From Rebecca billardiae RCC1528 (lineage: Eukaryota > Protista > Haptophyta), in assembly GCA_965240325.2 (NCBI GenBank), contig OZ251224.1, positions 372,001 through 436,000 on the forward strand: a stretch of 64,000 bases of DNA, written 5' to 3'. A program made the position numbers and the translations under genes. The notes beneath the pieces are model-generated. The model was given only the letters and a program-made list of their open reading frames with translations. It ran no database searches and was not told the DNA's origin. Positions 12,953 through 61,840 of the stretch are shown one piece after another. Every line of letters begins with the position of its first letter. The stretch's first letter is position 1.

Positions 12953-13204
12953 GGCGCCCGGGCGAGACGCGCGCGCCGCAAGCCGGCACCGCCGCGCGTG
13001 ACACAGAGAGGAGCAAGAAGGTCGACGACCCCCTTGGGCGCAAGCTGCCGCCGCCCTGCTGAGCAACCTCGCCCTTCCCTCCTCACGGCTTGTCAGACAA
13101 ACCCACGCTGGCGGCGGAATGTCCGGAAAGCGCAGATCACCAACCGGACGGCCGGCTCCCCACGGGGAGCCGGCCGTCCGGTGCGCAGCAAATAGGCGTC
13201 GCGC

Positions 13205-14001: not shown

Positions 14002-14436
14002 GCTGTTCGAACAATCTGCTCACCAAGCAACAAAACCGCTCATCTCCGCTGAGTACGCGAGGGCATCGTCGCGCGCTGGGGCTCGCCGATGCGCCAACAC
14101 CTAGGCCCATCGGGCAGAGGCCGTGGCTCGTCTTAATTGGGCCTCTGGCACACGCGCGCGCGCGCTCTCGCGCGGCGGGCCGCCTCCTGGACGCGTCGCG
14201 CGGAAAGTAGCCGGGCCCTGCGCGCGGCGAGGGCGGCGAGGGCGGGCGGGAGCGCGCGCGATTGAGCCCCATAGGTGTCTTGAGCCGCGCCGACCTCGCG
14301 CGCGCACCCGCAGCGGCCGTGGGTGCGCGTCCGAGCGCGCCGCGTGAGGCCGCCATCGCGCCGTGCGCGCGCGGGGCCGTCCCCCGTGGGTTTGTCTGAC
14401 AAGCTCACGGCCTCATGATCAGTCTGGACGGAAGCC

Positions 14437-19128: not shown

Positions 19129-19216
19129 TATGATGCTGATGTAGTGATGATGCGCGCTAGCATTGGTGATGATGCTGATGTGTTGAGTTCGCGATCAAGG
19201 TTTCAGCCGCTGCTTA

Positions 19217-31872: not shown

Positions 31873-33155
31873 GCGACTCTCCAATGGCCCAATGTGTCTG
31901 TGACTGTCCGGACGGCGATAACTCCGCGGCCGCGCGCCGCCACGCCCACGGCCCCCGGGTACGGGCGGCACGGCGAATGCGCGGCGCCTGACTGACTCAC
32001 TAGTCACTGACTGCCCGACCTGTTCGGACGGCGCGGACACGTATATACTGTTATACGTGTCTGCTGCACTCGGCCCGGTGTAATTCGGCTGCCCGTTGCA
32101 TGTAGTCACGGGGCACTACGCGGCGCATTAGTTATCAGATACTCACTACTCAGACTACATGCGCACCGTCAGTACAAACAACATCACTCGTCCGATCAGC
32201 ATGATACCCGTGACCGTTGTGGGCTGGCCAGGGTAGGGCTGGAGGCTTCGGCCGCCAGCCTGATCACCCGGAGCCCGTTATGGCCCGCGGTGCAGGGCGG
32301 AGCGCGTAGCGTGGAGCCCCGCCGGGGGCCCTCACTACGTTGTCAAAAAGATCTTTTGATCAAAGAAAAGGGGACGGGGGACGATTTTGAGGGCTGTTGG
32401 AGGGTGAGTTTTCGCTTTTTCGAGGGGTACATTGGCCCATTGCTTTGCATTAGCAAGACTCGATTGACGAAATAGCCGCGCCCGCTCCAATTCCATATCT
32501 ACGGACGGACGTGAGCCTGTGGACGTGCATTTGTCAGTATATGATCTGGGGGCACTACGCGGCGCATTAGTTATCAGATACTCACTACTCAGACTACATG
32601 CGCACCGCAGTACAAACAACATCACTCGTCCGATCAGCATGATACCTGTGACCGTTGTGGGCTGGCCAGGGTAGGGCTGGAGGCTTCGGCCGCCAGCCTG
32701 ATCACCCGGAGCCCGTTATGGCCCGCGGTGCAGGGCGGAGCGCGTAGCGTGGAGCCCCGCCGGGGGCCCTCACTACGTTGTCAAAAAGATCTTTTGATCA
32801 AAGAAAAGGGGACGGGGGACGATTTTGAGGGCTGTTGGAGGGTGAGTTTTCGCTTTTTCGAGGGGTACATTGGCCCATTGCTTTGCATTAGCAAGACTCG
32901 ATTGACGAAATAGCCGCGCCCGCTCCAATTCCATATCTACGGACGGACGTGAGCCTGTGGACGTGCATTTGTCAGTATATGATCTGGGGGCACTACGCGG
33001 CGCATTAGTTATCAGATACTCACTACTCAGACTACATGCGCACCGCAGTACAAACAACATCACTCGTCCGATCAGCATGATACCTGTGACCGTTGTGGGC
33101 TGGCCAGGGTAGGGCTGGAGGCTTCGGCCGCCAGCCTGATCACCCGGAGCCCGTT

Positions 33156-44765: not shown

Positions 44766-45013
44766 CTCGTGCGTCCGCCGTAGATGGTCGGTAGCGCCGG
44801 CCTGATTGCGTGACGACCGTCTGACGGCGGCGCGGCCACGTACGATAACGCGATTGTAAGGCCGATGACCGGCACCGTCTGATCCGACGCCCCGAGCGCG
44901 ACTCGTGCGTCCGCCGTAGATGGTCGGTAGCGCCGGCCTGATTCCGTGACGACCGTCTGACGGCGCGGCTACGATTGTACTGCATGGCCGATGACCGCAC
45001 CGTCTGATCCGAC
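44766..45013 (+). repeat. Imperfect direct duplication (about 120-bp unit x2)
   Basis: CTCGTGCGTCCGCCGTAGATGGTCGGTAGCGCCGGCCTGATT... at 44766 and 44902. Confidence 0.85.
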
Positions 45014-45329
45014 ACCCCAGCAAACCGTCGGTCCGGCGCGGGACTCCGGGGCCGGCGGGCGGGCCGGCGCGGGCGGACCGGTCCGGGAGTCGGAGTCAGA
45101 CTCGCAGACAGTCGGACTGTCTGGGAGTCGCCGCGGCGGACTCGTGTCTACAGTCACAGAGCAATGCGTTCTGTCGTGTAATCTCGCACGCGCCATGCAT
45201 CCGCGACCGGGCCTGACTCAGTACGACTGATATCACCAATCGCGCTGCGCGCGCGGACGCCACCGGCAACGGCCACCGCACTGTCCACTGACCACTCACT
45301 CACCGCTAGCCGGCCAGGGCCGCGCCTCG

Positions 45330-47084
45330 TCACATGGGCACGGTGAGGTTGGGCGTGAGCTTCCCAGTCGACTCGTACTGGAGCACGGCGCGCACGAGGT
45401 TTGCATTGTACAGCTTGTCCGCCTCGTTCATGTAGTTCTCGTTGAGCATGCCGGCCATCTGCGACTCCTTGACGAGCCGCGCGTGCGTGACCAGCTCGCC
45501 CTGGTGCGCGACGGCGCGTCGGCGCGCCTCTGCGCGCAGCCTGCTCTCCACCTCCTTGGCGGCGCGCAGGTTGGCGGCGTCCGTCGACGCCTGCGCACGG
45601 GGCGCGGCAGCCGCAGCCGAGGCCGGGCGCAGCCGAGCGCGTGCGCGCGCGTGAGCACAGCTGCCAACCCGCGCGCAGCTCGTGCGCGCCCCCATCTCCA
45701 AGCACAGCCATGGGCGAGCGCGCGCACGCTGGTCCGCGCGCCGCTGCGCACCTGCTCACGGTCCGCCTGCCGTTCCTGTTCCCGGCGCTGCTCGGCGAGC
45801 TGCATCTGCTCGGTGAGCGAGCGCAGGATGTCCTTCTGCTGCTCATCGAACTTGAGCTTGTCTCGCCGTTCCCTGCGCGCGGCCGAGGCCAGGGCCGGGG
45901 GATGGGCGCGGGGCGGGCGCACGGCGCGTGAGTGCACGCGCGCGCGCGCCCAGCCGGCGCGCGCAGGGGCGCGATGCGCGCGCGGCGGCCACCGTGCGGC
46001 GCCGTGCGGCGCACCTCGCCTCCTGCTGCTCCATGTACTCCTTCTGCGCCTGCAGCATGCTCATCTCGTCCCTGCGCGCGCGCTCGGCCATGTCTGCGCC
46101 CGCGGTCTGGCCGTAGGCCTGCTGCAGCTGCGCCTGCCGCGCATGCGTCTTGCGCATCTGCTCGGTGCGCTTGGCCTCCTGCTCGTCGAGCATCTGCGTC
46201 CAGAGGGCGTCGAGCCGGGCCACCTCGTCGTCCTCCTTCGCCTTCGCCTCCGCCTTGATCCTGCGCGACTTCTCGTTCTCCTCCTTGGCCAGCTCGAGCC
46301 GCTTGGCCTTGGCGACCGCCTCGCGCGCGCGCTTGAGCTTGGTCGCCTCCTGCGCGGCGCGCAGCTCGTGCAGCATCTTCTCGTCCTCGAGCCGGGCGAG
46401 CTCGGCCTCGTCGCGCTTGCGCTGCTCGACCTGGCGCTGCTGCTCCCGGTTCAGCTCGAGCTCGTGCTGCACCTTTTGCCTGTACGCGCGCTTCTCCTCC
46501 TCCGCCTTCTCGACCGCGCGGCGACGCGCGTCCTCCTGCTTGCGCACGGCCGCCGCCTCCTCCTCCTCCTCCTTGCGCTTGAGCGACTCCTTCTCGGCGA
46601 TCTGGTGGCGGATCTGGCGGTTGAGCAGCTGGCGCGCGGCGGTCTCGCGCTCGAGCTTCTCGCGCTCCGAGTCGTCCCCGTGGCGCAGCTTGTACTTGTA
46701 CACGCTGTTCCAGTCGACCCTCGCCTTGGCGTACTCGGGCGCCGAGTCGGCCGCGACCTTCTTGTCCTCAAACGTGCCCGACGTGATCATGTTGAGGCTC
46801 TTCTTGATGTTGCGCTCGAGCTCGCGCACGTCGTCGGGGGCGAGGCGGCCCTTCGCCAGCGCGCGGTCCGCCTCGGCGCGGATCACCGCGCGCACGTGCG
46901 GGTTGGAGCTCGCCCCGAACTGCTTGGCGAGCTTGGTCTCGAGCATCTCCTTCAGCTTGCGCCGCCGCTGCAGGCTCTGCGCGGAGGCCTCGTTCGCGAC
47001 GGCCTTGGCCGGCTTGGGCCGGCTGATCTCGACGAAGCCCTCAGGCGACGGCACGAGCGTGCCCGCCTGCTGGTTGAGCACCAT
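45330..47084 (-). CDS. Long coiled-coil protein (possibly ciliary), 3 exons (introns 45873-46014 and 45591-45751)
   Basis: E/K/R/Q-rich helical ORF; canonical splice sites keep the frame through to the stop at 45330. Confidence 0.75.
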
Positions 47085-47305
47085 CGCACGCCACGCGTCG
47101 CGCGCGCGAGGAGCACGCCGACGAGGGCGGGCGCCGCCAATAACAACAGCAATGGCGGCCGTCGGGGCGTAGTCAGAGAATCGTAACGACCCCTTCGTCG
47201 TGAAAAATCTGGAGATCGGCAGTTTCGCGAGGGAAAAATCTGCAGCTTCAGCGATTTCAATTGCTTTTTTAAAGAGCAGGCAAGGCTCCCCGAACAACAG
47301 GCACG

Positions 47306-48886
47306 ATGGCGGCATCGCGTGATGCCGAGGGTGCTGCCTTCCTTCGGCGGCTGCGCGCGGCGAGCGCGGCGGACCCTTCGCTGGAGGCGCGGGCCGGCGC
47401 CGCCGAAGGCAGCCGCCTGCAGCCGCAGGCCAACCCGACGACGAACGAGCTGCTCGCCAAATTCGCGCGCGAGGCGCTGAGCGGAGTTTTCGGGCGCACG
47501 CAGCACGCGGACGCCACGCCGCGCGCCGCGCTCGCGCCCGTGCTCGCCGGCACGCGCAGGCTGCTCTGGCGCTGGCTGCGCCCGTGGCTCGGCCTCGCGC
47601 TCGTACTCGCGGCGGCGTGCTCGCGCTCCGTGCTGCTCGGCCTCGCGGCGCTCGCGGTGCTGGTGCCGTGCGCGAGCGACTGGCAGCTGCGCCGCTCGCT
47701 GTGGCACTCGGGCGCGGTGCGACCGGGGCTGCACTTCCTCGAGACGGCGCGCAACCGCGCGATCGCCGCGCGCTTCCGCGCCGCGCGCGCGCTCTGGCTG
47801 CCCCGCGCCGAGCGCGAGCTCACCCCGTGGCTGTGGAACGGCGACCTGCAGACGCTCTACCCGTTCCTCACGTACGGCCAGCAGCGGCGCGCGTACGAGC
47901 GCGTGTGGATCGAGGCGACGGACGCGGGCGCGCGCGGCGTGGGCGGCGGCGGCGAGCGCGTGGCGCTGGACATCGCGCTGCCCGAGCGCGGCCTCGACCC
48001 CTCGCGCCCCCTCGCCCTCATCACGCACGGCCTCAACGGCGGCAGCGCGGAGGCGTACGTGCTCGACTTTGTGGCGCACGCGTGCGAGGCCCTCGGCTGG
48101 ACGTGCGCGGTGCTGGTCGCGCGCGGGCTGGGCGGCACGCCGATCCGCAGCGGCGAGCTCTTCCACGGGGCGCGCACGGCGGACCTCGCCGCGGCGTGCG
48201 CGCTGCTCCGCGCGGCCGCGCCCGACGCCGCGCTCGTCGGCGTCGGCTTCTCGATGGGCGCTGTCGTGCTCGCCAACTACTGCGGCGTGAGCGGCGCGGA
48301 GTGCCCGCTCGCGTGCGCCGTCGCGGTGAGCGGCTGCTACGACTGCGTCGCGAACGCGCGCTTCGAGTACAGCCAGCGGATGTGGCAGCCGTGGCTCACG
48401 CAGCAGCTCAAGACCAACTACCTGCTGCGCGAGCCGCACGCCACCTTCCTCCGCGCCTCTGGCCGCGTGGACGTGGCCGCAGCCCTCGGCGCGCGCGTCA
48501 GCTCGATCACCGACTTCGACGCGGCCACGGTCGTGCCCTACCAGGGGTACGCGCACGTGGACGAGTACTACGCGGACATGAGCGTGGCGCACGCGCGCAA
48601 GCTCGAGCGCGTCGCCGTGCCGCTGCTTGCGCTCCACGCGTGCGACGACCCGATCGTCGACTCTGACTCGTACGCCGACTCGATCGCGCGCGCGAAGCGG
48701 CCGGAGGGTGGCGGCAACGAGCACTGCTGGTTCCTGATGACTGCGCGCGGCGGGCACGTCGGCTGGTGCCTCGGCGCGAACCCGGGGCGCCAGCGCTGGA
48801 ACTTTATCCATCGCAGCGTCGTTGACTTTGCGCACGCGGTGTTGGCAGAGCCCTTCGCCGAGCGCGCCGACGCGCCGCCGCCTTAG
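47306..48886 (+). CDS. Alpha/beta hydrolase, ABHD1/3-YheT family
   Basis: NGDLQT, HGLNGGS, nucleophile GFSMG, DDP and GGHVGW. Confidence 0.9.
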   Translation: MAASRDAEGAAFLRRLRAASAADPSLEARAGAAEGSRLQPQANPTTNELLAKFAREALSGVFGRTQHADATPRAALAPVLAGTRRLLWRWLRPWLGLALVLAAACSRSVLLGLAALAVLVPCASDWQLRRSLWHSGAVRPGLHFLETARNRAIAARFRAARALWLPRAERELTPWLWNGDLQTLYPFLTYGQQRRAYERVWIEATDAGARGVGGGGERVALDIALPERGLDPSRPLALITHGLNGGSAEAYVLDFVAHACEALGWTCAVLVARGLGGTPIRSGELFHGARTADLAAACALLRAAAPDAALVGVGFSMGAVVLANYCGVSGAECPLACAVAVSGCYDCVANARFEYSQRMWQPWLTQQLKTNYLLREPHATFLRASGRVDVAAALGARVSSITDFDAATVVPYQGYAHVDEYYADMSVAHARKLERVAVPLLALHACDDPIVDSDSYADSIARAKRPEGGGNEHCWFLMTARGGHVGWCLGANPGRQRWNFIHRSVVDFAHAVLAEPFAERADAPPP

Positions 48887-49370
48887 GAGCGGTAGCCGTA
48901 GCCCGAGCCGCCCGCAGTAGCGTACTTCACTAAGTATAGTACTTATTGCGTAGTAACGGTAATGCGAGTAAGCGGCTGATCGGACGCTCTGACAACGGTC
49001 CTACTCACGGTCGACGATGAACGAACTGAGACTGCGCTTTGCGTGTATATATAAGGCCAGAGGTACCTGGCGCGCTCAGGTTGTGCGCTGCCGATTCCCA
49101 GCTCGCTGCTCGAGAAGCGAGGCGGTGCTCGCGCCGATGACTTGCCGAATGCCCGGGGGCAGCAGCATGGCTGGTTCGTCCGCCAATCTGGCACTCGGGG
49201 CACTTTGCTCGTGCACCCGCGGCGTACCCGCAGAAGAGTCCTGAAGTTCTGCGAGGGCGGCTGCGACGAAACAGGTAAGTGGAGTGCAGAGGCCTCACAG
49301 CGAGCCCCTCCGTCATGCAGCTCGTACACACTCAGTTATTGTACCAATAACACCACATATATGTATATAC

Positions 49371-50656
49371 ATGACCGCGTTCCGCGGTCCTTTTCTGCAT
49401 AGAATCAACGCAGTTGGGGGCCCGCGGTGGCCGTGCAATCGCGGCTCTCCGCCGTAGTGGCAGTTCGCCAGTTGAAGTCGGTTCTGAGATGACTGAAGCT
49501 ATTAGTCCGACCGTCGCCCTGCCTGCGCGACCGCGAGACTCATTCACACTTCACACAATCACAGCAGCGGACCTGAGACCGCACCCGGCACCGGTCGTCA
49601 AATCGGACGTCCGTCTGACAACTAGCTGCCAAATGTCCAACTGGCTGATCAGCTCGGATCCGACCCGTCCGCGATCGTGCCATCGGCATCGGAATTACTA
49701 CTAGTAGCTGCCAAACTGTGTCCAACTCTGGCTGATCAATCAGCTCGGATCCGACCCGTCCGCGATCGTGCCGAGTGAGTCGTGCCGCGGAGCTCGGAGT
49801 ACTGAAGGAGTCGGGTGTGACAGCAGGGTGCTTTAGCGCTGCGGCCCGTGCCAGCCAACGACCAGACGTACTCTGGCCACTTGACCCGTTGCACGGGTGA
49901 GTGACCGTACGCCCTGCCTAGTGCCTACCGCGCGCGCCGCGCGACCGGCGACTCGGGGTGATGGAGAGCGGATGGCGACAGCAGCAGCAGTCCTCATGAA
50001 GACGATGAAACTGGCGGCACGGGTGCACGAGGTGGCAGGCGAAAGCGCGCCGACGAGACCGCATTTGACACACCTGAGCCGCACGCGCGTGCCGTCGCCG
50101 AGCGGCGAGCGCTGCAAACGCGCAACCGTACCGCGCGCGCCACGACGGCGCGGCACTAGCTGATGCAGGCCGTACTGCCGGCACTGCTTCTGCGATCATG
50201 CGCCACGGTCGCAGCTGACTGCGTGAGCAGCAAGCGGGAGGCGGGTCCGGAGGCACGTGCAGGCGCCGTCCGGCATATCCGCCATCGCCCATCGTGCCGG
50301 GGCACGTCACCGGCGACGATCCGGATGTGGCCCAGTCCGGACGTCACGCGATCCGGGAAGATGAGTACGATTCGCTCGTAACGAACCGTTACACTAAAGT
50401 CACGGCCAGGCTCACGTCCCGTCCATCGATTACTTATGGAATCAGCTGGGCGCGCTCTTTTTCGGCCTAATAGACCTCTCTATGCGATCTCAAAAACTCG
50501 AAACTCGGTCTCCGCCAGCCCTAAAAATCGCCCCCCGTCCCTTTTTTTCCGCCGCCCCCCGTCCCTTTTTTCTTGATCAAAGATCTTTTTGAAACGTGGT
50601 TCGGGCCCGCTGGTGCGGGCTCCACGCTGCGCGCTCCGCCCTGCACCGCGGGCCAT
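49371..50656 (-). mobile_element. Non-autonomous Helitron2/Helentron-like element, copy 3 (about 1.3 kb)
   Basis: Same ends as 17599-19128 (ATGACCGCGTTCCGCGGTCC ... TGCACCGCGGGCCAT); different interior. Confidence 0.75.
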
Positions 50657-50696
50657 TATATACGACTTTATACTTATAACAGCAGTAGCTGCTATG

Positions 50697-50739
50697 TTTA
50701 TATATATATGTATATGTATATATATACATATATATATAA
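50697..50739. repeat. (TA)n-rich microsatellite
   Basis: TATATATATGTATATGTATATATATACATATATATAT. Confidence 0.9.
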
Positions 50740-51276
50740 GTCGGCTGGCTTTTATAGTTTTATAATTTATCCCGATCATCCTGAGGCTGATGCCTTAGCG
50801 TAGCTAGTTAGTAGCGCAGCTACTACGTACGTAACGATATAACTGGGACCAGGCCCGCCTCGCGGCGGACTCGGCCCGCGGTCCGGCGGCAGCCGCGGGG
50901 GCGGCGGCCGGGTGACAGTAGCGGCGGAGCGCCCGACTGCTATTCCTCCTTCCGCGCGACGCTCCGGCTACGCGGCTAAGGTAGCGATGGGCCTGCCGAC
51001 CCCCCTCTTTGCCAGTCGCCCCGACTCTGCCCGCAACCCGCGCTATCTAACGAGGGTCGCAGTTGATCAGTAAGGGGACTGGCTGAGGGGCGGCGGCTCC
51101 CGGCCACCGTCGCGTAGGGGGGTGCCACACCTCGGAGAGGTGGCCACACCTCGGAGAGGTGGAGGCCCGGTGGCCCGGGGGCCGGTGGCTCGAGGCCGTC
51201 CGGGCCGCCGCCGCAGAGGGGAAGTGTGGGAAGAGACGCGAGAGTCGAGTGCCAGCGGTGCCACAGGCGGTCGGCG

Positions 51277-52230
51277 TCAGCCCGGATCCGCAAAGGCGGC
51301 AGCCAGCCGAAGGCGCAGCTCCCGGCGCTCCGCCGCGCGGGGAAAATACGTCGCAGGGGCGGCGTTCCAGCGACCGGCCAGCGCGCGTTCCTGCCCCGTG
51401 AAGCCGAGGAGGTCAGCCACGGCAGCGGCGCACCGGCGCACCGAGTTGGTAGACACGTCAGCGGGCCGCAGCCCAACTTCTGCGCCCACCCTGCGAAGCC
51501 AAGCCAAATAAGCCGAGTAGGGGACCGGTGCCCCCGAAGGGAGCACGAACAGGGGGTCGTCGGCCGAGGACTCCCGCGGGCGGCGAAGGAGGTACCTGCC
51601 CAATGCCGCCACTGGGCACAGCGGCGCACCCGCCGGTAGGCGGGGCAGGAGCTCAATCGCCAAGCGGCCCGCGTGGTGTTTCTCGCTGCGAAGGGTCACC
51701 AGGAAGCCGAGGGCGGTGGGTGCGAGGTCCCTGAGCCGGATGAACTTGGAGGACCCGTACCGCGCGACTCCGGCCACGCACTCGGCCCGACACATCGTAA
51801 AAAGCTGCACAAGCAGCATGGCCCAGAAAGCAGCGTCACCATCGCGCACGCGTGCGCCGATCGCGCGGACCGAATCCAGCGAAAGCGCCGGGGCCGGGGC
51901 AGGCTGGCGGGAGGGGAGCCGCCGAAAAGCGGCGACGATGTGCTGACGTCCGAGGTCCCTGATGGGCCCCTCCTGCACACCCAGGACCTGAGCCGCCACC
52001 TGCACCGCCGACACGTATTGCGTGACGGTCGTGGGAGCTTTCCCCTGCAGCCCCAAGTGCGCCGCAAACAGCCGCAGGGCCAGGGCCGACGGGGGCCACA
52101 CTGGCGCCACGCCACCCGAGTGAAAGAAGGCGACGTACGCTCGGACCCCCGCCGCGTTCGGGCCCGAGCCCACCGCCGCCGCTGCGAGCGCCACACACCC
52201 CGCGGCTGCGGCCACGATGGGGTTGTCCAT
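51277..52230 (-). CDS. Tyrosine recombinase (YR) of the retrotransposon
   Basis: N-terminal SAM-like domain (KAPTTVTQYVSAV); catalytic R (MCRAE), K (RSEK), CPV, PLF, N-x-x-R (TNSVRR), GRW and Y (ATYF). Confidence 0.88.
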   Translation of the reverse strand: MDNPIVAAAAGCVALAAAAVGSGPNAAGVRAYVAFFHSGGVAPVWPPSALALRLFAAHLGLQGKAPTTVTQYVSAVQVAAQVLGVQEGPIRDLGRQHIVAAFRRLPSRQPAPAPALSLDSVRAIGARVRDGDAAFWAMLLVQLFTMCRAECVAGVARYGSSKFIRLRDLAPTALGFLVTLRSEKHHAGRLAIELLPRLPAGAPLCPVAALGRYLLRRPRESSADDPLFVLPSGAPVPYSAYLAWLRRVGAEVGLRPADVSTNSVRRCAAAVADLLGFTGQERALAGRWNAAPATYFPRAAERRELRLRLAAAFADPG

Positions 52231-52490
52231 TACCGCCGGGTATTCCCGGCTTGTTTGCCCAGCATGAAGGGCCTCGGCCGCCTGGCGCTTGGAGGGTAGC
52301 GGCCGCCCGAAGCCCACGCTGAAACCGACCGGATCGCACCCGGCGGAGAGCTCAGGGCGGAGGCCCGCCCGCTGGCAGGGGCTTTGATAGGAACGGGCGT
52401 CGGGGCAAGGGGCTGCCCGGTCTGCCGTGGTGCAGGCAGCGACGAAAGACGCCTGCCGCTGAGCGACGAGGTCGCAAGAAGCGACAGCAC

Positions 52491-52790
52491 GCGATGTGCA
52501 TATCGACCGCTGAGAGAATTAAGGGATGGCAAGCAAGCGATGTGCACATCGCAGACCGAAGATGAGACTGCAAGCAAGCGATGTGCATATCGCTGAAAGA
52601 TGAGACTGCAAGGAAAGCGATGTGCATATCGCTGAAAGATGAGATTGCAAGCAAGCGATGTGCATATCGCTGAAAGATGAGATTGCAAGCAAGCGATGTG
52701 CATATCGCTGAAAGATGAGATTGCAAGCAAGCGATGTGCATATCGCTGATGAAAGATGAGATTGCAGGAAAGCGATGCGCGGATCGCTGA
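52491..52790. repeat. 38-bp tandem repeat array carrying about 8 palindromes GCGATGTGCAYATCGC
   Basis: Unit GCAAGCAAGCGATGTGCATATCGCTGAAAGATGAGATT at 52570, 52608, 52647, 52685 and 52723, with degenerate flanking units. Confidence 0.95.
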
Positions 52791-52850
52791 ACGGAGAAGG
52801 GGGCATGGCCGGGGGCGAGCCTGCGCGCCGTGCGGCGAGAACGCCCGGCG

Positions 52851-54608
52851 TCAAAGGGCCAGCGCCGCTTCGCCCGCCAACCGAGGCTCGGCCGCGAGCG
52901 AGCAGAGCTCGAGCCACATGTCAGCCGACGTCTCCCGGCGCCGGCTGAGGGCGTCGGCGAGGCGGTTGCGAGCACCGGGTAGATGGCAGCACCAGAGCGT
53001 GATCGCGTGCTCCGCCACCAGCAGCGAGAGGCGGTGCAGGAGGCCATTGAGCAGCGCCGAGCCCGGCACACGCCACCGGCGCAGCCACCCGAGGGCCACC
53101 GTGCTGTCCGTGAAAAGGCGAACGTGGCAGCCAGCCAGGTACGGCGCCCACTCGATGGCAGCATGGAGGAGCATGTACAGCTCCATGTCTGCGATGTGCC
53201 TCAGCTCGCCCGACACGCGCAGCGACGCCAAGTCCTTGCGCAGCGCCCAGCCGTTGGAGCAGGCGGCGCCGCCGCCCGCCGCCTCCCAGGCGGCGTCGGT
53301 AGCAATCACCGGCGCGCCCACCGCCAGGCCCACCGGGCGGAACAGCCGCCGCCAGCCGGCACCCCGCTCGAGGAGCGCGGCGAAGAATGCGCACTCGCTG
53401 GGCAGCGCGGCGCCGAGCTGGGTCGAGAGACGGCCCTGCGCAAACGCCGACGGCGTGTGCGCGAGATCGACGAAGGGGCGAAGGAAGGCCCGGCACGACG
53501 GCTGGATCGTAGCCGCCCAGCCGAGGCAGCCAATGAGCTTCTGCAGCTCACGCTCGGAGGGCCGCGATGCCCGCAGCTCGGAGAGGAGCGCGGCGTACCG
53601 GGCGCGCTTCTCTGCCGGCAGCGAGACGGCATCGTTGGCGACGTCGACGTCAAAGCCCAGGACCACGGCGCGCTTGGCGGGCGCCACGAGCTTGCCCGGC
53701 TTGTCGGCCGGGTCGAGGCCCATGGCGGTCAGCGTGGCGCACAGCCGCTCGAACGCCGCCTCGAGATCGGCCTTGCGATCGCCCCACCCGAAGAAATCGT
53801 CGATGTACGAACCGAGGCTGAACGAGAGGAGGCCGGACCAACGCGCGACGAAGGCGTCGCGAACGGCGTCGGACAGGCGCACAAACCAGTAAGGAGAGGA
53901 TGCGAGACCGAAGGGAAGAGATGTGAAGAAGTAGTAGAACCCGCGCCAGAACACGCAGAGCAGGCTGTAGTCCTCCGGACGTACGGCCATCCGCGTGTAC
54001 GCGCGCGCGATGTCCACCTTGAACACGTAAGAGTCAGGCGTGAGGGAAGACAGCATGCGGTCGATGCGCTCGAAGGAGAAGGAAGGGGCGTGCACCCGCG
54101 GGTTCACGCCCGAGGCGGTCATGTCGACGATGAGGCGCCTGTCGGCGCCCCCATCTTTGGGCACCGAGCCCAGCGGGGACACGACCATGCGCGCGCGCGG
54201 GAAGGGGCGGTGCTGGAACGGGCCAGCCAAAACGCCGAGAGAGACGTACTCCGCGATGCGCGCGTCGACAAACTCGGGGAAAGCGCGCGCTGAAGGATGA
54301 TTGGGACGGAATGCGGCAGAAGGCTGGCCGGCGAAGAGCACGTCGACGCCGTCGCGCAGCTCGCGCGACAGGTCGACGCCCGCGCCGCCCAGCAGGAACG
54401 CAGACACTTGCTGGAAACGAAGTTGGAGCGCGGTCGGCGCGACTGGCAGGCTGGCGGCGAGGCCAGCCAGCATGCGCGAGCGCTGGCACATCTCGGCGGC
54501 TGTGATCGGCGGGCAGGTCACTGTAGGGGCCGCACCGGCAGCCCACGACACCGGCAGGTCGAGCGCATCGACGCCGGCGTTCTCGCCACCCGCCGCCGCC
54601 GCCGCCTC
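52851..54608 (-). CDS. Reverse transcriptase-RNase H (DIRS type)
   Basis: SPLGSVPK, RRLIVDM, KVDIARAY, LPFGLASSP and YIDD; RNase H motifs ATDAA, IADME, FTDS and HLPGARNRLADALSR. The frame is open up to the gag stop. Confidence 0.93.
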   Translation of the reverse strand, partial: EAAAAAGGENAGVDALDLPVSWAAGAAPTVTCPPITAAEMCQRSRMLAGLAASLPVAPTALQLRFQQVSAFLLGGAGVDLSRELRDGVDVLFAGQPSAAFRPNHPSARAFPEFVDARIAEYVSLGVLAGPFQHRPFPRARMVVSPLGSVPKDGGADRRLIVDMTASGVNPRVHAPSFSFERIDRMLSSLTPDSYVFKVDIARAYTRMAVRPEDYSLLCVFWRGFYYFFTSLPFGLASSPYWFVRLSDAVRDAFVARWSGLLSFSLGSYIDDFFGWGDRKADLEAAFERLCATLTAMGLDPADKPGKLVAPAKRAVVLGFDVDVANDAVSLPAEKRARYAALLSELRASRPSERELQKLIGCLGWAATIQPSCRAFLRPFVDLAHTPSAFAQGRLSTQLGAALPSECAFFAALLERGAGWRRLFRPVGLAVGAPVIATDAAWEAAGGGAACSNGWALRKDLASLRVSGELRHIADMELYMLLHAAIEWAPYLAGCHVRLFTDSTVALGWLRRWRVPGSALLNGLLHRLSLLVAEHAITLWCCHLPGARNRLADALSRRRETSADMWLELCSLAAEPRLAGEAALAL

Positions 54609-55685
54609 CTAGATGCGGCCCACCGCCGCCGGCCAGCCGTCGCCGGACAGCCCCACCGCGTGGGCCCCCGCGAGGTGATCGGGCGATGCGCAAATGGCAC
54701 ACCGCGGCGCGTGGAACTCGTCGAACTCGCCGGGGCCAAACGCCGTGCCGCCGCGGCCGATCGGGCATGACGCGACGGTGCAGCGCTCGCCAGTGAGCTG
54801 GAAGCGCTGGCAGGCGCGCGCCGCGTTCGCTTGCGCCTTGGTGAGCAGCGGTGCGCCCCCCGCGCCCACAAACTTCTGCAGCGACGGCGGGACGTAGTGG
54901 TCAGGCCGCGCGGTGCGCGGCGCAAAGCCCCCACCGCCGCCGGGCGGGAGCGCCCCGCCCCCGCCCCCCGCCGCTTCGAGCGCCGCGCCGCCGGCCCCAC
55001 CCAGCTCGGCGGGTGCGAGGCGAGGCCGCTGCAACGCCGCCCCCGCGTCGCGATCGCCCGCCGGCGCCGACCGCTTCAGCATAGGAGCGGCCGCGACCGC
55101 GGCGTTGGCCGCGCGCAGCGACGCCGACACCGCTTGCGCCGCCGTCAGCTCGGCGTTGAGCGCGCGCGCCTCGGCCGACGCGCTGTCGCGCAGGAAGAGG
55201 ATCGATGACGCGCGGCCCGAGCGCCGCTCCTCCGCCGCGGCGGCAACGAACGATTTGTTCACCACCGAGAGGAGGGACTCGGCGGGCATCAGGCCGCGCA
55301 GCTGCTCGAGCCACGACGAGAACTCGAGCGCCTCGGCCCGCATGGCCGGCGACCAATGAGAGGCTGGGGAGGGGTCATCTGGCGAGGCGGCCGGGACAAA
55401 CGTCGTCGTGAGGCAGCCCAGCAGCGCCTCGAGGGACTGGAAGGGCTGATCCTTCGGCTGCACCCCGCCGAGGAGACGCCCCCCGCGAGAGAACTCGCGA
55501 GCGAAGCGCTCCCCCAGGCCTGGAAATGCCTGGACCATATCGCGCAGGTTGTAGCTCGTGCAGAGCTGGCCAGACGAGTCGCGCACCACGAGCGCGCGGG
55601 GCGCGTCACGCGCCGGGTCCGCGACCACCCGGCGCGCCGGGCCGGCCCCCGACGACGCCCCCGCCTGCTCCGTCATCGCCTGCAT
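54609..55685 (-). CDS. Gag-like ORF1 with C-terminal zinc fingers
   Basis: CQRFQLTGERCTVASC...H followed by CAICASPDHLAGAH. First ATG at 55685, but the frame is open without an ATG back to about 56020. Confidence 0.75.
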   Translation of the reverse strand: MQAMTEQAGASSGAGPARRVVADPARDAPRALVVRDSSGQLCTSYNLRDMVQAFPGLGERFAREFSRGGRLLGGVQPKDQPFQSLEALLGCLTTTFVPAASPDDPSPASHWSPAMRAEALEFSSWLEQLRGLMPAESLLSVVNKSFVAAAAEERRSGRASSILFLRDSASAEARALNAELTAAQAVSASLRAANAAVAAAPMLKRSAPAGDRDAGAALQRPRLAPAELGGAGGAALEAAGGGGGALPPGGGGGFAPRTARPDHYVPPSLQKFVGAGGAPLLTKAQANAARACQRFQLTGERCTVASCPIGRGGTAFGPGEFDEFHAPRCAICASPDHLAGAHAVGLSGDGWPAAVGRI

Positions 55686-56812
55686 GAGCGCCGCCACCGA
55701 CTGGGCCGAGAACCCGAGCCCGGCGGCGTGAGCGGGCGGCGCGGCGGTAGAGGCAGGGCCAGCAGCGCCCCCCGTCGCGCGGTCGGCCGCCGCCGCCGCC
55801 GTCCCCGCCGGTAGCGCGGTAAGGCCGGGGGCGAGAGCGTGCGCCGCGAGGCCCGCAAGCAGCGACGACGGCGCGGCCGCCGCCGCCGCGCCCGCCGCGT
55901 CCAGCGCGACCGAAACCCCGGGAGCAGCAGAAGCAGCCGCGAAATCAGTAGCGACGCCACCTCCCGCACCCGAGGAGGAATAAGCCGACGGCCCGCTCGC
56001 AGCCGACGAGGGTTGCGCCCGCCCTTAGCCGAGGTCGCCACCGAGCGGGATACGGTCGGTCGACCGAAGGCGAAGTGCTGCTGAACAGCTGGGGCTATCA
56101 GCCCAGGCCCAGCCCCGCCTCTGGCTGCCGAAGAGCCGGGCCGGCCGCGGCACCGCATCGGGCTCGGCGGCGCTCAGAGGTAGAATCTACCGGTTCGGTA
56201 CAGGCGGGTCCGGCTGCCCGTATATTGCCCGCCCAGGAATCATACCGCTTTGCTTGGCGCGCACCCGACGCCCGGAGCTTGCTGCCCGCCCAGGCACGGT
56301 CCGGTCAGCCGCCCTAGCAGGTCAGCAGCGGTTAGCAGCATTGAGGAGCAGACGATCATGGCGGCGGGCTGGCCCAGTTATACCCCTATAACCGAACGGT
56401 TATAGAACAACGTTTCATCGCTCGTCACTCCGTAGCTCAGACGACTACTGTTGAGACTGAAATTCCCGCCCCCCCCGTCGCGCAGACGACTACTGTTGAG
56501 ACTGATTCCCGGCCACCCCGTCGCGCGGCCTGCCGCCGCAGGCGCAAGGTCGTGCGCACATGGTCCTAGCAGCATGAGGCAGAGGCGTCTTTCCGGGCCT
56601 CCGCAGGATCAGGATGCCGCCCGGATCGCCGTCCTGTCGTCGTGATGGCGCGCGAACGTCCGCAAGATGATGGCCCCATCCACGTCGCCGCGTCGCGTGA
56701 TCGTTTGTGCGAGCGCACGAGGTGACCAGTCCAGCAGCCAGGCCCAGAGGTGAGAGGCGTGCAGCGCGCTCACGTGCGCGCCGCTAGGCAGCCAGCAGCG
56801 GGGCTGCGCGGC

Positions 56813-59582
56813 CTAGTTGACAATCTGGAAGCGGAAGCGCGAGGCACCGATGGCGAGCACGTCGCCGTCGCGCAGCACGGCGCTCTCCTTGGCGCTGAGC
56901 TGCCAGTCGTTGACCGCGGTGCCGTACGTGCTGCCGTCGTCACACGCGTGCAGCTTGCCGCCCTTCGACTCGATGCGCATATGCCGGCGCGAGATCTGCC
57001 GGCCGGGCGGCGGAGAGGGCGCGGCGGTGCTGGCGCGTGAGGGCGCGGCGGCGCGCGAGGGACGGCGCGCGCGCGCGCGCGAGGCACGACGCGCGCGCTC
57101 ACCTGATCGTCCAGGTTGAGCACAACATCGCACGCGGACGATCGGCCGATCAGCACGCTCGAGCTGCCGGCGGGCAGCCGAAAGACGGGCAGCGAGGTCG
57201 ATCCCAGGTACGGCCCGTCGAGCGGGACGAGCCGGCCAGAGCCGCCCGCGACGGGCGGCACGGCCGATGCGGCCGCCACCGGCGGTGCCGCCGCCGTGTG
57301 TGGCCGGCTGGGCCCCGCGTTGGCCGCGTGCCCGGGCACGCGTGGCAGCGAGGGCGAGTCCTTCCACTCGCCAGAGCCGCCGCGCCTGCGGGGGCGGGAG
57401 GGGCCGGCGCGCGGGGGCGGCGTGAGGCGGCGGCGGCGCACACCGCGCGCGGGCCGCATGCACCGCGCGCACCGGTGTCTCTTCTGCAGCTCGGGCCGGC
57501 CGAACACTTCGCCCAGGTCGCAGGTGAGCTGGCGCGTGAGCGGGAAGAAGACCTCATCCGGGTCTGAGCTCTGCGCACGCGCACGCACGCACACGCACGC
57601 GCACGCACGCACGCACGCACGCACGCACACACGGGGGCGGAGGGAGGGCGCACAGGGGGACGGAGGCGGTGAGCGGGGCGAGCGGGTGCGCGCGCGCACG
57701 GCGCCCGCGCCGCGCCCGCGCCGCGCCCGCGCCGCGCCCGGCCGAGCGCGCGCGCTGCGTGCCTGCTGCCTGTGGAGCGCCGCCTCGAGCAGCGCGGGCT
57801 CGAGCCACGGCGCGTGCCGGTCGCAGTGGGCGTCGAGGTTCGTGGCCTTCTCGACCGCGCGCGCGGTCGCGGCCGGCTGCTCTGCCGTCGGCGGCTTGGA
57901 GGCGTGCGCCGCGGCGGCGTGGTTCGACGGGCCGAGAGGGTTCGCGCCCTTGCCCGCGCCACCGCCGCCCGACGGCGGAGCGGGCGCCGCGAGCTTTGCG
58001 GCGGGCCGCGGGTCGGCGCGCGCCACCTGCGGAGGGTTGGGCGGCGCCGAGGCCTCCGGCTGGTCGTGCTTCTTCATGATCTCTTCGAAGCGCTGCTTCA
58101 TGCGCTGCAGCTCGTGCACGTCGAAGCCGAGGCCGCCCGCGCCGCCGCCCGCGCCGCCGCCCGCGCCAGTGTTGGTCGCCGTGGCCGCCGTGGCCGTCGA
58201 CGTCACCGTCGATGTGGCCGAGCTACTGCCCGCGCCCGCGCCCGCACTCGCGCCCGAAGTGGCGTCGGCCGCGGCGCGCAGCGACGACGGCGGCTCGGGC
58301 TGCGGCTTGGGCAGGCTCGCTACTTCGGCGGCCGCGGCCTCCTTGGCGGCGATGGCGGTGGCGAGCTTGCTCGCACTCAGCTCCAACGCCGCGCCGCCGC
58401 GCTTGGACGCGGACGCGGGCGCGGGCGCGAGCGCCTGCGGCGGCGGGTGCGCCGCCGCGGCCGGCAGCGGCCGTGCGACCGGCGCGGCGCTCACGCCCAT
58501 CACCGCGGCGTTGTCCGCCGCGGCACGCGCCGCGGCGGCCTCCACCGCCTCGCGCGCCTCGAGCCCGTCCAGCTGCACGCGCACGCCCGCCAGCGCCTCG
58601 AGCGCGCCGCCCAGCCTCGCGTCGATGCTCTCGGCCAGCCCGCGCGCCTGCGCCTCATAGAACGCCTTCACAAAGTGCGCTGGCTCGGCGTATGCGGCCT
58701 CGTCCGCGTCGAGCGCGGCGGCGCGCTCCATCTGCTCGTCGACGGCGACGAAGGGCACGGCGAGCGGGCCGTCCGCCTGCACGCGCTTCAGCAGCGAGCA
58801 CAGCAGCTTGTTGCCCTCGGCGAGCTGGGCGGAGCGGCCCGCGAGCCGGACGCGGCCTGCCTCTGCCGTGCGCTGCTGCTGCTCCAGCTGCGCGCGCGCG
58901 CGCTCCAAGCGCTGGTTCTCGGCCTCGGCGGCGCGCAGCGCCAGCCGGGCCTGCTCCTCGCGCTGCTTCGCCTCGAGCAGCTCGGCTGCCGCCCACGGGC
59001 GCAGCGCATCGCGGCGCGGGCGAGGGGGCGGCCGCAATCGTCAGCGCAGGACGCGCGCGCGCATCGCGCATGTGCGGGCGGCGCACACCTCCCAGCCGGG
59101 CCTGCACCTCGGCCGCGGCCGCGCTGTCAAGCGGTGGTGGCGGTGGCTGCGGCATGTGCAGCTCCACCTCCACGGCGCGTGGCTCAGGCTCCTGCGTGCG
59201 TGCCAGGACGCGCGCGGCAGGGCGGATGCAGGGTGGTGTCGTGAGGGCGCAGCGCCGCCGCGCCGGCTCGGCAGCTCGGGTGCGCGTCACCTCGCACCCA
59301 CGCGCGATGCGCCCTGTCGCCCGACAGGGCGCGCGCATGAACGATGCGCCGTACCGATGGCCCAGCCGGCGCCGACGCCCCCGCACCACCCGCAGGCAGC
59401 GGCGCGGCCGACGAGCTCGCAGCCCCGGCCGCCGCTGCCTGCGGCACGTCCACGTCGGCGAACCTGTCAGTCGAGGGCGGCGCGCTCACGTCGATGTCGC
59501 TGTAGTCGAGTACGCGCGCGACAGGTCGCTTCGTAGAGCTCAGGCGCGGCGAGTTGCCCGCGAGCGTGCCCAAGGGCCGCAT
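56813..59582 (-). CDS. Multi-exon coiled-coil protein with an INCENP IN-box-like motif and a C-terminal FHA domain
   Basis: FHA: IGRSSACDVVL..ISRRH..DDGSTYGTAVN..LRDGDVLAIG. Spliced IN-box-like segment. The 5' exons are less certain. Confidence 0.75.
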
Positions 59583-59795
59583 CGCGCTGCCCGCACAAAC
59601 CAACCGCCCTGCTGCCGGGCAATTCAAACACGTCGAACGTGGGAGCTCGCGCAGCTCCGCCGCCGTCGAGTCCCGCTAAACCACCCGAGACCTCCCGGAC
59701 CGGCCCTTTCAAAACGGCAGCAGCGGAACTTTCCCGACTCTCCAACTCTCCAACGTAGCCGGGCGAGGGGGGGCACTCGCGCACAGCAAACGGCA

Positions 59796-61840
59796 ATGGC
59801 TGGCCACGCCGCGAGCGCCCGCGCGCTGCCGGCGGACACGATCCGCCAGACGCTCGCGCCGCACGTCCTGCCCGGGCTGCTGCGGCTGCTGCAGCTCGGC
59901 CGGATTCTCGTCCACGCCCTCCGCGAGCGCATCCGCCGCCGTCCCCTCCTCGCCCTGCTCGCGTCGCACGCGGCCAGCGGCGCGCTGCTCGCGGCGCTCG
60001 TGCGCGCCGTGTCGCGCACGCGGCCGCGACTCGAGCTCGCGTCGGTCGGCCGCGCCGCCAGCGCCCTTCGCGTGGGCACGGCCCCCTCCCCGCCCGCCGG
60101 CGGCCCCGCGGCCAAGCGCGTCAAGCCCAAGATGCGCGCCAAGATCGAGAAGATGGTCGTGCACAAGGGCGGCGCCGAGCCCACGCGCGCGCTGCCGGCG
60201 CGCGGCGCGGCGGACGCGGATGTGCTCGGGCGCCTCGCGCGCTGGTCGGCGGAGGAGCGCACGTGGCGCGACGGCCGGCTCTCGGGCACCGTGTACGGCG
60301 GCGACGAGCGCGTCACCGAGCTCGCGGCGGGCGCGATGCGCGCGTACGCACACGCCAACCCGCTGCGGCCCGACGCGTTCCCGTCCGTGCGCCGGATGGA
60401 GGCGGAGGTGGTGTCGATGGTGAACGGCTGCTTCAACGGGCCGGAGGAGGCGTGCGGGACGATGGCGTCCGGCGGCACCGAGGCCATCCTCCTCGCGTGC
60501 AAGGCCTACCGCGACCACGCGCGCGCGACGCGCGGCGTGACCGAGCCGAGCATCGTGCTGCCGTGCAGCGCGCACGCCGCCTTCCTCAAGGCGGCGCACG
60601 TGCTGCGCATGCGCTGCGTGCGCGTGCCCGTCGACCGCGAGACGTTCCGCGCGGACGTGGGCGCGATGGCCCGCGCGATCGACGACTCCACCGTGCTGCT
60701 CGTCGGCTCCGCGCCGTGCTACCCGCAGGGCGTCGTCGACCCGATCGTGGAGCTGGCCGTGCTCGCGCGGGAGCACGGCGTCGGGCTGCACGTGGACTGC
60801 GCGCTCGGCTCGCTGCTCGTCGCGCTGATGCCGCGCATGGGGCGGGCGCTGCCGCCGTGCGACTTCCAGGTGGAAGGGGTCACCTCGATCTCGTGCGGGC
60901 TGCACACGTACGGCTTCGCGCCGCAGGGCTGCGCGGTGGCGCTCTACTCGAACGAAGAGCTGCGGTGTGCAAGCGCGAGCGCGAGCGCGAGCGCGAGCGC
61001 GACACGGCTGGCGCGCGCACCGCGCGCCTGCGGCCTGGGCGGGCGCGCGCGCGCGCGCGCGGCGGGGCGCGCGCGGCCGAGCGCGCGGGTATGGGCTCAT
61101 GCGCGCGCGCCCCTCCGCACCGCGCGCGCCCGCGCGCGCCCGCGTGCGCCCCCGCTCGGCGCAGCCACCACCAGTACTTTGTCGCGTCCGATTGGGCGGG
61201 CGGCATCTATGCCACGCCGACGCTCGCGGGCAGCCGCTCGGGCGCGCTCGTCGCGGGCGCGTGGGCGGTGTTGGTCGGCATGGGCGAGGACGGGTACACG
61301 CGCGCGTTCGAGCAGATCCTGCACGCGGCGGGCACGATCGCGCGCGGCGTCGAGGGCGTGCGCGGCCTGCGCCTCCTCGGCCGCCCGGACGCGTCGGTCG
61401 TGTGCTTTGGCGCCGCCTCCTCCAAGGGCGACCGGCACGTGGACATGTTCGCGCTCGGTGAGGCGATGGGGGCGAAGGGGTGGGCGCTGGGCGCGCTGCA
61501 GCACCCGCCCGCGCTGCACGTGTGCGTCGGCCTCGCGCACGCCGCGGAGGGCGTCGCCGAGCGCTTCGTCGCGGACCTCCGCACCGTCGTCGACAGCGTC
61601 GAGACCGCGCCACCATCCGAGCTGAGCGCCGGCCGGCTCGCGGGCGGCGCGCTGCACGCCAGCCGCGCGGGCGTCCACGCTGAGCGCGACCCGGTGCCCG
61701 AGGACGCGGAGCTCGCCGCGGAGCTGGCGTGCTGCTTTGTGGACGCGCTGTACAAGGTGAGCAAGCCCGCGCCACCGAGCTCGCCGGCGGAGCCCGAGCC
61801 CAGCGCCATGGCTGTGGACTCCGCTGAGGACAAGCCCTGA
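59796..61840 (+). CDS. Sphingosine-1-phosphate lyase-like protein (group II PLP fold) lacking the catalytic Lys, 2 exons (intron 60965-61164)
   Basis: GRLSGTVY, NPLRPDAFPSVRRMEAEVV, SGGTEAILLACKAYRD, GSAPCYPQGVVDPI and DWAGGIYATPTLAGSRSG. Confidence 0.88.

Follow-up and report, generated by a model that had tools for sequence, protein, structure and literature searches.

A Ngaro-like tyrosine recombinase retrotransposon in Rebecca billardiae, with candidate short inverted ends at TATA

In the window (the whole 64-kb stretch of Rebecca billardiae RCC1528 DNA that was analyzed, contig OZ251224.1, positions 372,001 to 436,000), the segment 50842-56378 on the minus strand is a single copy of a tyrosine recombinase (YR) retrotransposon, with Ngaro-like gene content and from a deep, poorly sampled lineage. 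In its full form, the best reading is a Ngaro-like YR retrotransposon with short inverted ends at TATA, carrying neither split direct repeats (SDRs) nor inverted terminal repeats with an internal complementary region (ITR/ICR); we give this reading about an even chance. The absence of the long terminal repeat structures used by all described relatives is a lead rather than a proven design, because it comes from one copy with an uncertain right border; the end architecture described here is that of this copy and not a demonstrated property of the family.

Gene content and relatives

The ORF map gives an element of 5.5 kb in which gag, RT/RNase H and YR follow one another, all on the minus strand. 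ORF2 (52851..54551, minus strand; 566 codons from GTG, or 540 aa if the ATG selected for P0001 is taken as the start) encodes the reverse transcriptase (RT) and a probable RNase H. Pfam RVT_1 is found in it at 3.6e-8, above the curated cut-off, and its PDB matches are Ty3 and foamy-virus RT chains; judged by sequence, the RT is of the LTR-retrotransposon (Ty3) type. The RNase H region gives only sub-threshold Pfam matches (RT_RNaseH at 0.063 in the window, RVT_3 at 0.028 in the relative P0161) and aligns over its whole length with RT/RH relatives, and RNase H is probably joined to the RT. HMMER recovered 9513 relatives of ORF2. A long stem leads to the RT clade, whose nearest relatives are at most 43% identical and the remainder at most 36%. 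For the nearest relatives (L005-L008), every contig ends in a tandem repeat just past RT/RH, before the YR and the ends.

ORF3 (51277..52317, minus strand; 346 codons from GTG, 317 aa from the first ATG) encodes the tyrosine recombinase. Its homology came to light only through a phmmer comparison with the RT hits, which include three RT-YR fusions; BLASTP gives E 1e-14 to P0059:580-914, the C-terminus of one such fusion. A word-indexed homologue search with the whole protein or with residues 125-346 returned none, and Pfam returned no match above threshold. The YR family profile matches Cre at 2e-12 and XerD at 9e-5, and Cre is also the best Foldseek match (2.7e-8) of the AF2 model, which has a pLDDT of 67.6 with a 6-sequence alignment and of 40 with 4 sequences. 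The protein groups with retroelement YRs. Sequence and model together indicate a Cre-fold YR that takes the place of a DDE integrase in this element. Box II reads NSVR (N-x-x-R, with Asn for His) and the Tyr lies at W+8, one residue out of register; for these reasons the enzyme of the window copy may be impaired.

ORF1 (54609..55970, minus strand) is truncated; its frame runs open from 55970 or farther upstream, with a GTG at 55697 as the first start codon. It is called gag-like by position only, has no Pfam match, and shows a Cys/His cluster at its C-terminus. A second copy, the short-read contig L001 from the same organism, has 477 bp more than the window copy, including the gag ATG and 158 codons. 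The ORF1 of L001 is 601 aa long and starts inside this missing sequence, and the comparison places the deletion junction at 55939|55938. ORF1 deletions are reported for Cafeteria Ngaros as well (PMC8547959). Over 3.2 kb, L001/L002 are 99.2% identical to the window copy (about 0.75% divergence), with 5 synonymous and 3 non-synonymous differences in the RT; by this measure the window copy is young, and the element is multicopy and recent. L001/L002, L009, L010 and L011 are all short-read contigs from read sets of the same organism, and L009 and L010/L011 were retrieved by exact-protein look-ups in read assemblies.

An earlier note on this DNA had described a complete YR retrotransposon with intact gag, RT-RNaseH and YR frames. 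The identification by coding content is upheld, given the RT, the probable RNase H, the Cre-fold YR and the gag-like ORF1. "Complete" was wrong, since gag carries the 477-bp deletion relative to L001. As for intactness, the YR frame is open; gag is truncated and the catalytic residues of the YR are non-canonical.

A 19-bp x2.1 hairpin repeat lies at 51124-51162 in the 3' untranslated region (50860..51276, minus strand), which matches nothing in the 5' region of the element; the 5' untranslated region (55971..56362, minus strand) contains no repeat of the 3' region. The spacer of 530 nt between RT/RH and YR is occupied by a 38-bp tandem array of hairpin units (52486..52791, minus strand), and tandem arrays are also present at the equivalent position in relatives. 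No methyltransferase is found in the element by Pfam or in the ORF map, in which the RT/RH frame ends at 52851 and leaves no coding room before the YR. Pfam detected no DDE transposase domain in the element ORFs, and the tRNA and Rfam scans gave no match.

The element lies in an AT-rich intergenic island flanked by an alpha/beta-hydrolase gene and by an FHA-domain gene, the latter with its 3' end toward the island. AT-rich, (TA)n-like islands without any element are present at other places in the window; thus the AT-rich flanks look like host DNA. GC is 55-84%, with very high values in the neighboring hydrolase, FHA and PLP-decarboxylase genes.

Ends and right border

On the left, a TATA read directly at 50838..50841 precedes the left terminal inverted repeat (TIR) arm, ACTGGGACCAGGCCCGCC (50842..50859, minus strand), which forms the 3' terminus in the element's own orientation. 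This TATA can be taken as a target or crossover core, or as the outermost 4 nt of the inverted repeat. On the right, the arm GGCGGGCTGGCCCAGT (56363..56378, minus strand) forms the 5' end and is followed by a TATA at 56379..56382. The end sequences quoted in the earlier note, from 50838 and up to 56382, are present exactly as written. The inverted repeats of about 17 bp that it proposed pair at 16 positions, with two 1-nt indels and a perfect stretch of 6 nt, or 10 nt when the palindromic TATA is counted.

When 56150-56420 was compared with 50650-51290 for exact matches of at least 9 nt in either orientation, only the 10-nt inverted pair TATAACTGGG/CCCAGTTATA was found. It coincides with the GC/AT composition break at each end; at the left arm, GC climbs from 0.46 to 0.88. 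Among random position pairs, about 2 in 10,000 give an end-anchored arm match as good as this. In free local alignment the arms score 22, no better than random 300-nt pairs (mean 24), and blastn-short does not detect them. Allowing for freedom in the choice of borders, the probability that the arms arose by chance is roughly 1e-3 to 1e-2.

Neither long ITRs, nor an ICR, nor SDRs were found in the window copy by repeat search, blastn-short or end-region comparison, as the earlier note had reported. There is no direct repeat of at least 9 nt between 56150-56420 and 50650-51290, and the positive control, L003, shows its SDRs clearly. An internal copy of the joined ends, as an ICR would be, is absent. 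Neither TIR recurs in the 64-kb window, so no related MITE is present there. Related-locus searches of metagenome, genome and viral collections yielded no other copy and no relative with its ends, exact searches with DNA from the termini and flanks gave no match, and tblastn and blastn of the window revealed no second copy.

The right border is uncertain and lies between 56378 and 56410. The right-flank contigs L010 and L011 both stop at 56381; the assembly graph breaks there in two runs, and 56411-57609 forms one unbroken unitig. This break independently locates the right border to within 3-32 nt. The contigs would be predicted to stop at about 56350 if a multicopy element ended at 56378/56382 in unrelated flanks, or at 56379 if the graph forked against an empty allele reading AACGA-TATA-CCCC. 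Because the contigs stop at 56381, the short-element model needs 56383-56410 itself to be repeated, for example as a preferred target. Either these 28 nt (56383..56410), which contain the inverted pair TATAACCG-AA-CGGTTATA at 56387-56404, are repeated elsewhere, or the element extends to 56410 and they are its true outer end.

Two further statements of the earlier note are not supported by these observations. As TATA reads identically on both strands, a duplication of it is indistinguishable from an outward extension of the inverted repeat, and the two independent contig breaks at 56381 do not fit a duplication. The predicted empty site, AACGA-TATA-CCCCT, was not found, and the flank contig break does not match its prediction. 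The left-flank repeat at 50447-50659 was considered as a source of an empty paralogous site and rejected, as every copy of it stops at one shared position and the sequence beyond is different; a 13-nt stretch of the right flank that matches this repeat was judged to be chance.

Compared with known systems, the element shares with Ngaro-like elements (order DIRS) the order gag-like, RT/RNase H, YR, the absence of a methyltransferase, an RT of LTR-retrotransposon type, a Cre-like YR homologous to YRs fused to related RTs, and a size of about 5.5-6 kb. It differs in that the SDRs that define them (A1 ... B1 A2 B2) are absent and short inverted ends abut TATA. With DIRS1-like elements, which are also YR retrotransposons, it shares inverted termini, and a circle closed by joining them would have a palindromic junction; however, its inverted repeats measure about 17 nt, against about 100 nt or more in those elements, it has no ICR and no methyltransferase, and its ORFs lack the DIRS1-type overlap. 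PAT-like elements differ by the methyltransferase after RT/RH. VIPER-like elements (gag, YR, RT/RH, with SDRs) differ as well, since here the YR is downstream of RT/RH and SDRs are absent.

Competing explanations of the ends

The element may be longer, with its 5' end at 56410, its 3' end possibly at 50660 and the AT-rich tails included, so that the TATA-flanked repeats would be internal recombinase-binding sites. We consider this rather unlikely, and it has several observations on its side. The stop of L010/L011 30 nt inside 56410 is that of a unique flank meeting repeated DNA at k=31, a rule that also holds for the end of L009 at 44914, inside the duplicate 44902-44943, and for the 3' end of L001 at 52720, inside a perfect tandem zone ending at 52749. 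The end motif TATAACYG occurs again at 56387(+) and 56404(-), and TATAACAG lies at 50675(+). The neighboring repeat family stops at 50659 in all copies, which makes 50660 a possible junction. However, the outer segments have no inverted or direct repeat in common, and the sharp GC break and the sole inverted match fall at 50842 and 56378 rather than at the outer positions. AT-rich (TA)n islands are, moreover, ordinary intergenic features in the window, and a longer element would still be without SDRs and ITR/ICR.

Two other explanations would make the inverted ends foreign or fortuitous. An ordinary SDR-bearing Ngaro-like element may have lost its repeats by truncation or rearrangement, leaving an inverted match and TATAs that coincide by accident in an AT-rich site. 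This appears quite improbable, even though the window copy is demonstrably damaged by the 477-bp deletion, the arms do not exceed the random score in free alignment, the relative L003 has normal SDRs, and annotated DIRS and Ngaro families often have degenerate terminal repeats (PMC9210276). In a young copy the SDRs are expected to be near-identical, yet the two ends have no direct match of at least 9 nt. The loss of repeats at both ends together with a 10-nt inverted match on both composition breaks would require several coincidences (roughly 1e-3), and the graph break confirms the right border within its 3-32 nt. A composite origin, in which the retroelement body lies within DNA-transposon TIRs of 16-18 bp with a TA/TATA duplication and a DDE transposase acting in trans mobilizes it, is very unlikely in our judgment. 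Short TIRs with TA-type duplications are the hallmark of Tc1/mariner-like elements. There is also a precedent in MarCry-1_FO, a YR-encoding element riding between TIRs of about 16 bp with a TA-type duplication (PMC3212892). MarCry, however, encodes a DDE transposase and the window element has no such domain in its ORFs; the TIRs do not recur as a MITE in the 64-kb window, and the repeats of the retroelement itself, expected inside the TIRs, are absent.

Proposed route and meaning

Under the best reading, that of short inverted ends at TATA, an undescribed end architecture is plausible but unproven, and we place it at even odds. Joining the ends would give CCCAGT-TATA-ACTGGG, as the earlier note proposed, with inverted arms around an AT core in the general shape of a YR site (PMC3212892, PMC13465315). 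In the most likely mechanism, a circular double-stranded DNA would carry this palindromic site, and the YR would recombine it with a TATA-containing, AT-rich target, in the manner proposed for Cryptons, whose integration is presumed to proceed via a circle and the YR (PMC3212892, PMC13465315). The TATA at both junctions would then be a shared crossover core left by recombination and not a true duplication. Full-length cDNA might, as a best guess, be regained via transcripts longer than one unit, made on a DNA template that is circular or tandem; alternatively, an internal promoter might fire at the first base and complementary RNA ends might pair. A new replication route of this kind is speculation.

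Cryptons share with the element the lack of long terminal repeats and an identical sequence at both junctions, 4 bp here and 4-6 bp in Cryptons, interpreted as the recombination substrate (PMC3212892, PMC13465315), a likeness taken from a single copy in which the palindrome leaves the reading ambiguous. They differ in having neither RT nor gag genes and in being described as TIR-less, whereas an RT is present in the window element. Two further observations count against the best reading: the proposed 4-bp core is shorter than the canonical YR-site spacers of 6-8 bp (PMC3212892), and L003, a relative at a greater distance, carries SDRs of the ordinary kind. That this is a YR retrotransposon lineage without terminal redundancy, its ends cut down to a Crypton-like minimal site of arms around a TATA core, is possible but doubtful.

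If other copies extend further or have normal repeats, the finding is a new deep Ngaro-like lineage in a very GC-rich eukaryote, which alone has annotation value and is unsurprising. The four recognized YR-retrotransposon superfamilies are all defined by terminal repeat structures, and current replication models need these repeats for rebuilding the ends and closing the circle (PMC6681497, PMC9210276). If the best reading is true, the family has been active recently with no more than a minimal inverted site, and terminal redundancy would be shown to be dispensable. Another model of cDNA completion would be required, such as over-unit-length transcription from an excised circle or pairing of RNA ends. 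Retroelement YRs would moreover be mechanistically tied to Crypton-type integration, and the family may represent an evolutionary bridge between Cryptons and YR retrotransposons.

Coding capacity and a second copy

The element is almost certainly real and a tyrosine recombinase (YR) retrotransposon. Its length is 5537 bp (5545 bp if the TATA at each end is counted), and it lies in intergenic DNA between an alpha/beta hydrolase gene (47306-48886, plus strand) and the last exon of an FHA-domain protein (56813-57472, minus strand), which ends 430 bp from it; a PLP-dependent decarboxylase-like gene follows (58212-61625, plus strand). Its genes are on the minus strand in Ngaro order: a gag-like ORF1 ending at 54609, ORF2 for reverse transcriptase (RT) and probable RNase H (54551-52851), an array of 38-bp hairpin units (52791-52486; RNA fold z -4.55) and ORF3 (52317-51277). 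The 530 nt separating ORF2 from ORF3 leave no room for a methyltransferase. Along the element the plus strand has a strong A-over-T skew, and its long plus-strand ORFs are spurious, as expected at 70% GC. The 3' untranslated region holds a 19-bp hairpin repeat (2.1 copies, 51124-51162). Elsewhere in the window, G+C reaches 79-84% at 23000-29000, extreme even against the 55-84% found across the whole.

The RT and YR ORFs reported in the earlier note were both recovered. ORF2 exceeded the Pfam RVT_1 cut-off (3.6e-8) and matched Ty3 and foamy-virus RT chains; RNase H gave a sub-threshold match only. ORF3 matched nothing in Pfam or in two word-indexed homologue searches. Three of the RT relatives are proteins in which an RT is fused to a YR. 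The C-terminus of one of them, P0059, aligned with 288 residues of ORF3 (E 1e-14), and the C-termini of these three match Phage_integrase at 1e-4 to 5e-3. A profile of ORF3 and five fusion-type relatives matched Cre at 2e-12 and XerD at 9e-5. For an AlphaFold2 model of ORF3 (pLDDT 67.6), the top Foldseek match was also Cre (2.7e-8, TM about 0.5); XerA, XerH, Tn1549 Int and lambda Int ranked next. Thus, ORF3 is a tyrosine recombinase with the Cre fold. It retains Arg I, the beta-hairpin Lys, Arg II and the Trp. Box II reads N-S-V-R, with Asn replacing the His of the usual H-x-x-R, and Phe occupies W+9, the position of the Tyr in Cre and the five relatives; here the Tyr is found at W+8. In this single YR sequence, these departures may be either a trait of the lineage or damage.

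At least two recent copies exist. The window RT is 99% identical to P0001, a protein encoded by two Logan contigs of 3728 bp each (L001 and L002, from runs ERR14847149 and ERR14847150), which match window 55940-52720 at 99.2%. Two further contigs reproduce window DNA, L009 (ERR14847151) at 99.95% over 44914-49088 and L010 (ERR14847148) at 100% over 57609-56381; judged by sequence identity, these runs are genomic reads from the window's own organism. The gag had been described as intact. L001 and L002, however, carry 477 extra bases (L001:30-506) that comprise the start codon of ORF1 and 158 codons and are missing in the window at 55939|55938, a junction with 2 nt of microhomology (GC). The window frame is open across this junction and meets its first start codon only at 55697; its gag is therefore truncated. 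The loss recalls the ORF1 deletions of Cafeteria Ngaros (PMC8547959). Elsewhere the copies differ by 24 substitutions and by a single indel in non-coding DNA; the RT has 5 synonymous and 3 non-synonymous changes, and gag 4 and 7, respectively.

Termini and flanking DNA

The end sequences quoted in the earlier note were read directly at exactly the positions claimed: on the left, TATA (50838-50841) followed by an 18-nt arm (50842-50859); on the right, a 16-nt arm (56363-56378) followed by TATA (56379-56382). A repeat finder and a word-7 self-comparison of 50600-56600 showed no long direct or inverted repeats other than the tandem array and GC-rich low-complexity matches, in agreement with the original observation that long inverted terminal repeats (ITRs) and split direct repeats (SDRs) are missing. 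When the 5' region (56150-56420) was compared with the 3' region (50650-51290), exact matches of at least 9 nt were absent in direct orientation and numbered one in inverted orientation; this one, of 10 nt (CCCAGTTATA/TATAACTGGG), lies at the proposed termini. No sequence inside the element resembles the joined ends, as an internal complementary region (ICR) would. The window copy has no terminal redundancy and very probably neither SDRs nor an ITR/ICR system.

The short inverted arms fall on a GC break at both sides of the element. In free local alignment they are no better than random; anchored at the ends, only about 2 in 10,000 random position pairs match so well. With the choice of border allowed for, a chance origin is estimated at about 1e-3 to 1e-2. 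No further copy of either arm occurs in the 64-kb window. Because TATA is palindromic, its presence around one copy is compatible with a duplication, a shared crossover core or the outer part of the inverted repeat itself. We consider it as likely as not that the element's true functional ends are indeed these arms with their flanking TATA.

The right border was also examined in L010 and L011, k=31 contigs from different runs found through a small predicted ORF. L011 (ERR14847151) differs from L010 by a 24-nt indel (57075-57098) and three SNPs (57252, 57417 and 57433) in 1.2 kb; these are different haplotypes, which implies heterozygosity or a mixture in the material sequenced. Both contigs stop at 56381, two bases inside the right TATA. 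The behavior of such contigs was calibrated at two sites, both with an offset of exactly 30 nt: L009 begins that far inside a duplicated segment of 42 nt, and L001 ends that far inside the portion of the tandem array where the repeats are perfect. The segment 56411-57609 is single-copy, and the repeated element therefore does not extend beyond 56410. A multicopy element ending at 56378 or 56382 in unrelated flanks predicts a contig reaching about 56350; a fork against the proposed empty allele, AACGA-TATA-CCCC, predicts 56379, and one against a TA-duplication allele 56380. None of these stops was observed, and the TATA duplication and empty site put forward earlier thus find no support in the sole independent data. 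Two readings remain. The 31-mer 56380-56410 may be present elsewhere, either because the flank is itself repeated, for example as a preferred target, or because the element truly extends to 56410; alternatively, another allele may carry a non-A base at 56380.

The 28 nt beyond the right TATA contain an inverted pair, TATAACCG-AA-CGGTTATA (56387-56404, 5 nt outside the TATA), which mimics the element ends TATAACTG ... CAGTTATA. A 7/8 copy, TATAACAG, lies at 50675-50682, close to where the AT-rich flank on the left has its outer limit, and of five exact TATAACYG sites in the window, four are at these junctions. The palindromes AGTTATAACT and GGTTATAACT (2839-2848 and 7849-7858) equal the core of the predicted joined ends; they may be target or scar sites, or chance occurrences in AT-richer spots. 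These motifs are suggestive as candidate recombinase sites. Three other places in the window have (TA)n-like AT-rich islands resembling the left flank and no element, which speaks for a host origin of the AT-rich flanks, with an island of this kind selected by the element. The right flank also contains a 45-bp tandem repeat (2.3 copies, 56426-56526). A 438-bp satellite forms two blocks (30436-31611 and 32110-33426), and a 105-134-bp segment of it occurs singly at 18944-19131 and, adjoining the element, at 50447-50659; all copies of this segment stop at one identical base (...GGGCCATTAT).

Relatives and classification

Among 9513 RT relatives from a full HMMER scan, only two lineages were close, P0005 (43%) and the P0006/P0161 cluster (41-43%); all others were at or below 36%. 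In the tree, a long-stemmed clade with full support unites the window RT, P0001, P0005, P0161 and P0168; it is nested in a group to which the L004 element and two RT-YR fusions, P0059 and P0085, also belong. The close relatives are GC-rich metagenome contigs of 2-3.5 kb with gag and RT/RNase H (L005-L008). Each stops in a tandem repeat 100-200 bp past the RT/RNase H stop (L005 2312-2416; L006 2185-2251; L008 3185-3255; L007 3162-3337), so that an array 60-200 bp past this stop is found in the window element and in all four nearest-relative contigs. The unit sequences are unrelated from lineage to lineage, and the short-read contigs end there. As a positive control of the repeat search, a distant relative with 32% RT identity on a 3.2-Mb ENA contig (L003) yielded a complete Ngaro-like element (7019-14059) with textbook SDRs: A1 7019-7161, B1 13346-13562, A2 13553-13695 and B2 13814-14059. 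A tandem array of 35-bp units occupies 7892-8670 of this element, whose YR contains an in-frame stop.

The element resembles Ngaro in gene content and in RT and YR kinship but is without SDRs, the defining feature of Ngaro. It also has none of the long ITRs, ICR and methyltransferase that define DIRS1, differs from VIPER in gene order, and has ends resembling those of Cryptons, from which its RT sets it apart. For these reasons it should be placed outside all four superfamilies as defined (PMC6681497, PMC9210276), and "Ngaro-like coding, Crypton-like ends" is the accurate description. Since annotated families commonly show degenerate repeats or lack them (PMC9210276), the absence of repeats from one damaged copy is, taken alone, weak evidence. 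The case is stronger than this absence because the copy is young and the inverted match is well placed.

A possible route of integration

The integrating form would be a DNA circle, whose joined ends would make the palindromic site CCCAGT-TATA-ACTGGG. The YR would recombine this site with a TATA in AT-rich DNA and leave TATA on both sides, the same outcome as in the Crypton model of a circle integrated by its YR (PMC3212892, PMC13465315). At 4 bp, the core falls short of the 6-8 bp that the spacers of YR sites measure (PMC3212892); the real overlap may therefore take in the first one or two bases of each arm (GT-TATA-AC). By speculative analogy with pararetroviruses, and given that the integrated copy lacks redundancy, terminally redundant RNA could arise by transcription round the excised circle or, alternatively, pairing of complementary RNA ends could guide template switching. 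It is possible, though rather doubtful, that the whole family uses this architecture of minimal inverted ends.
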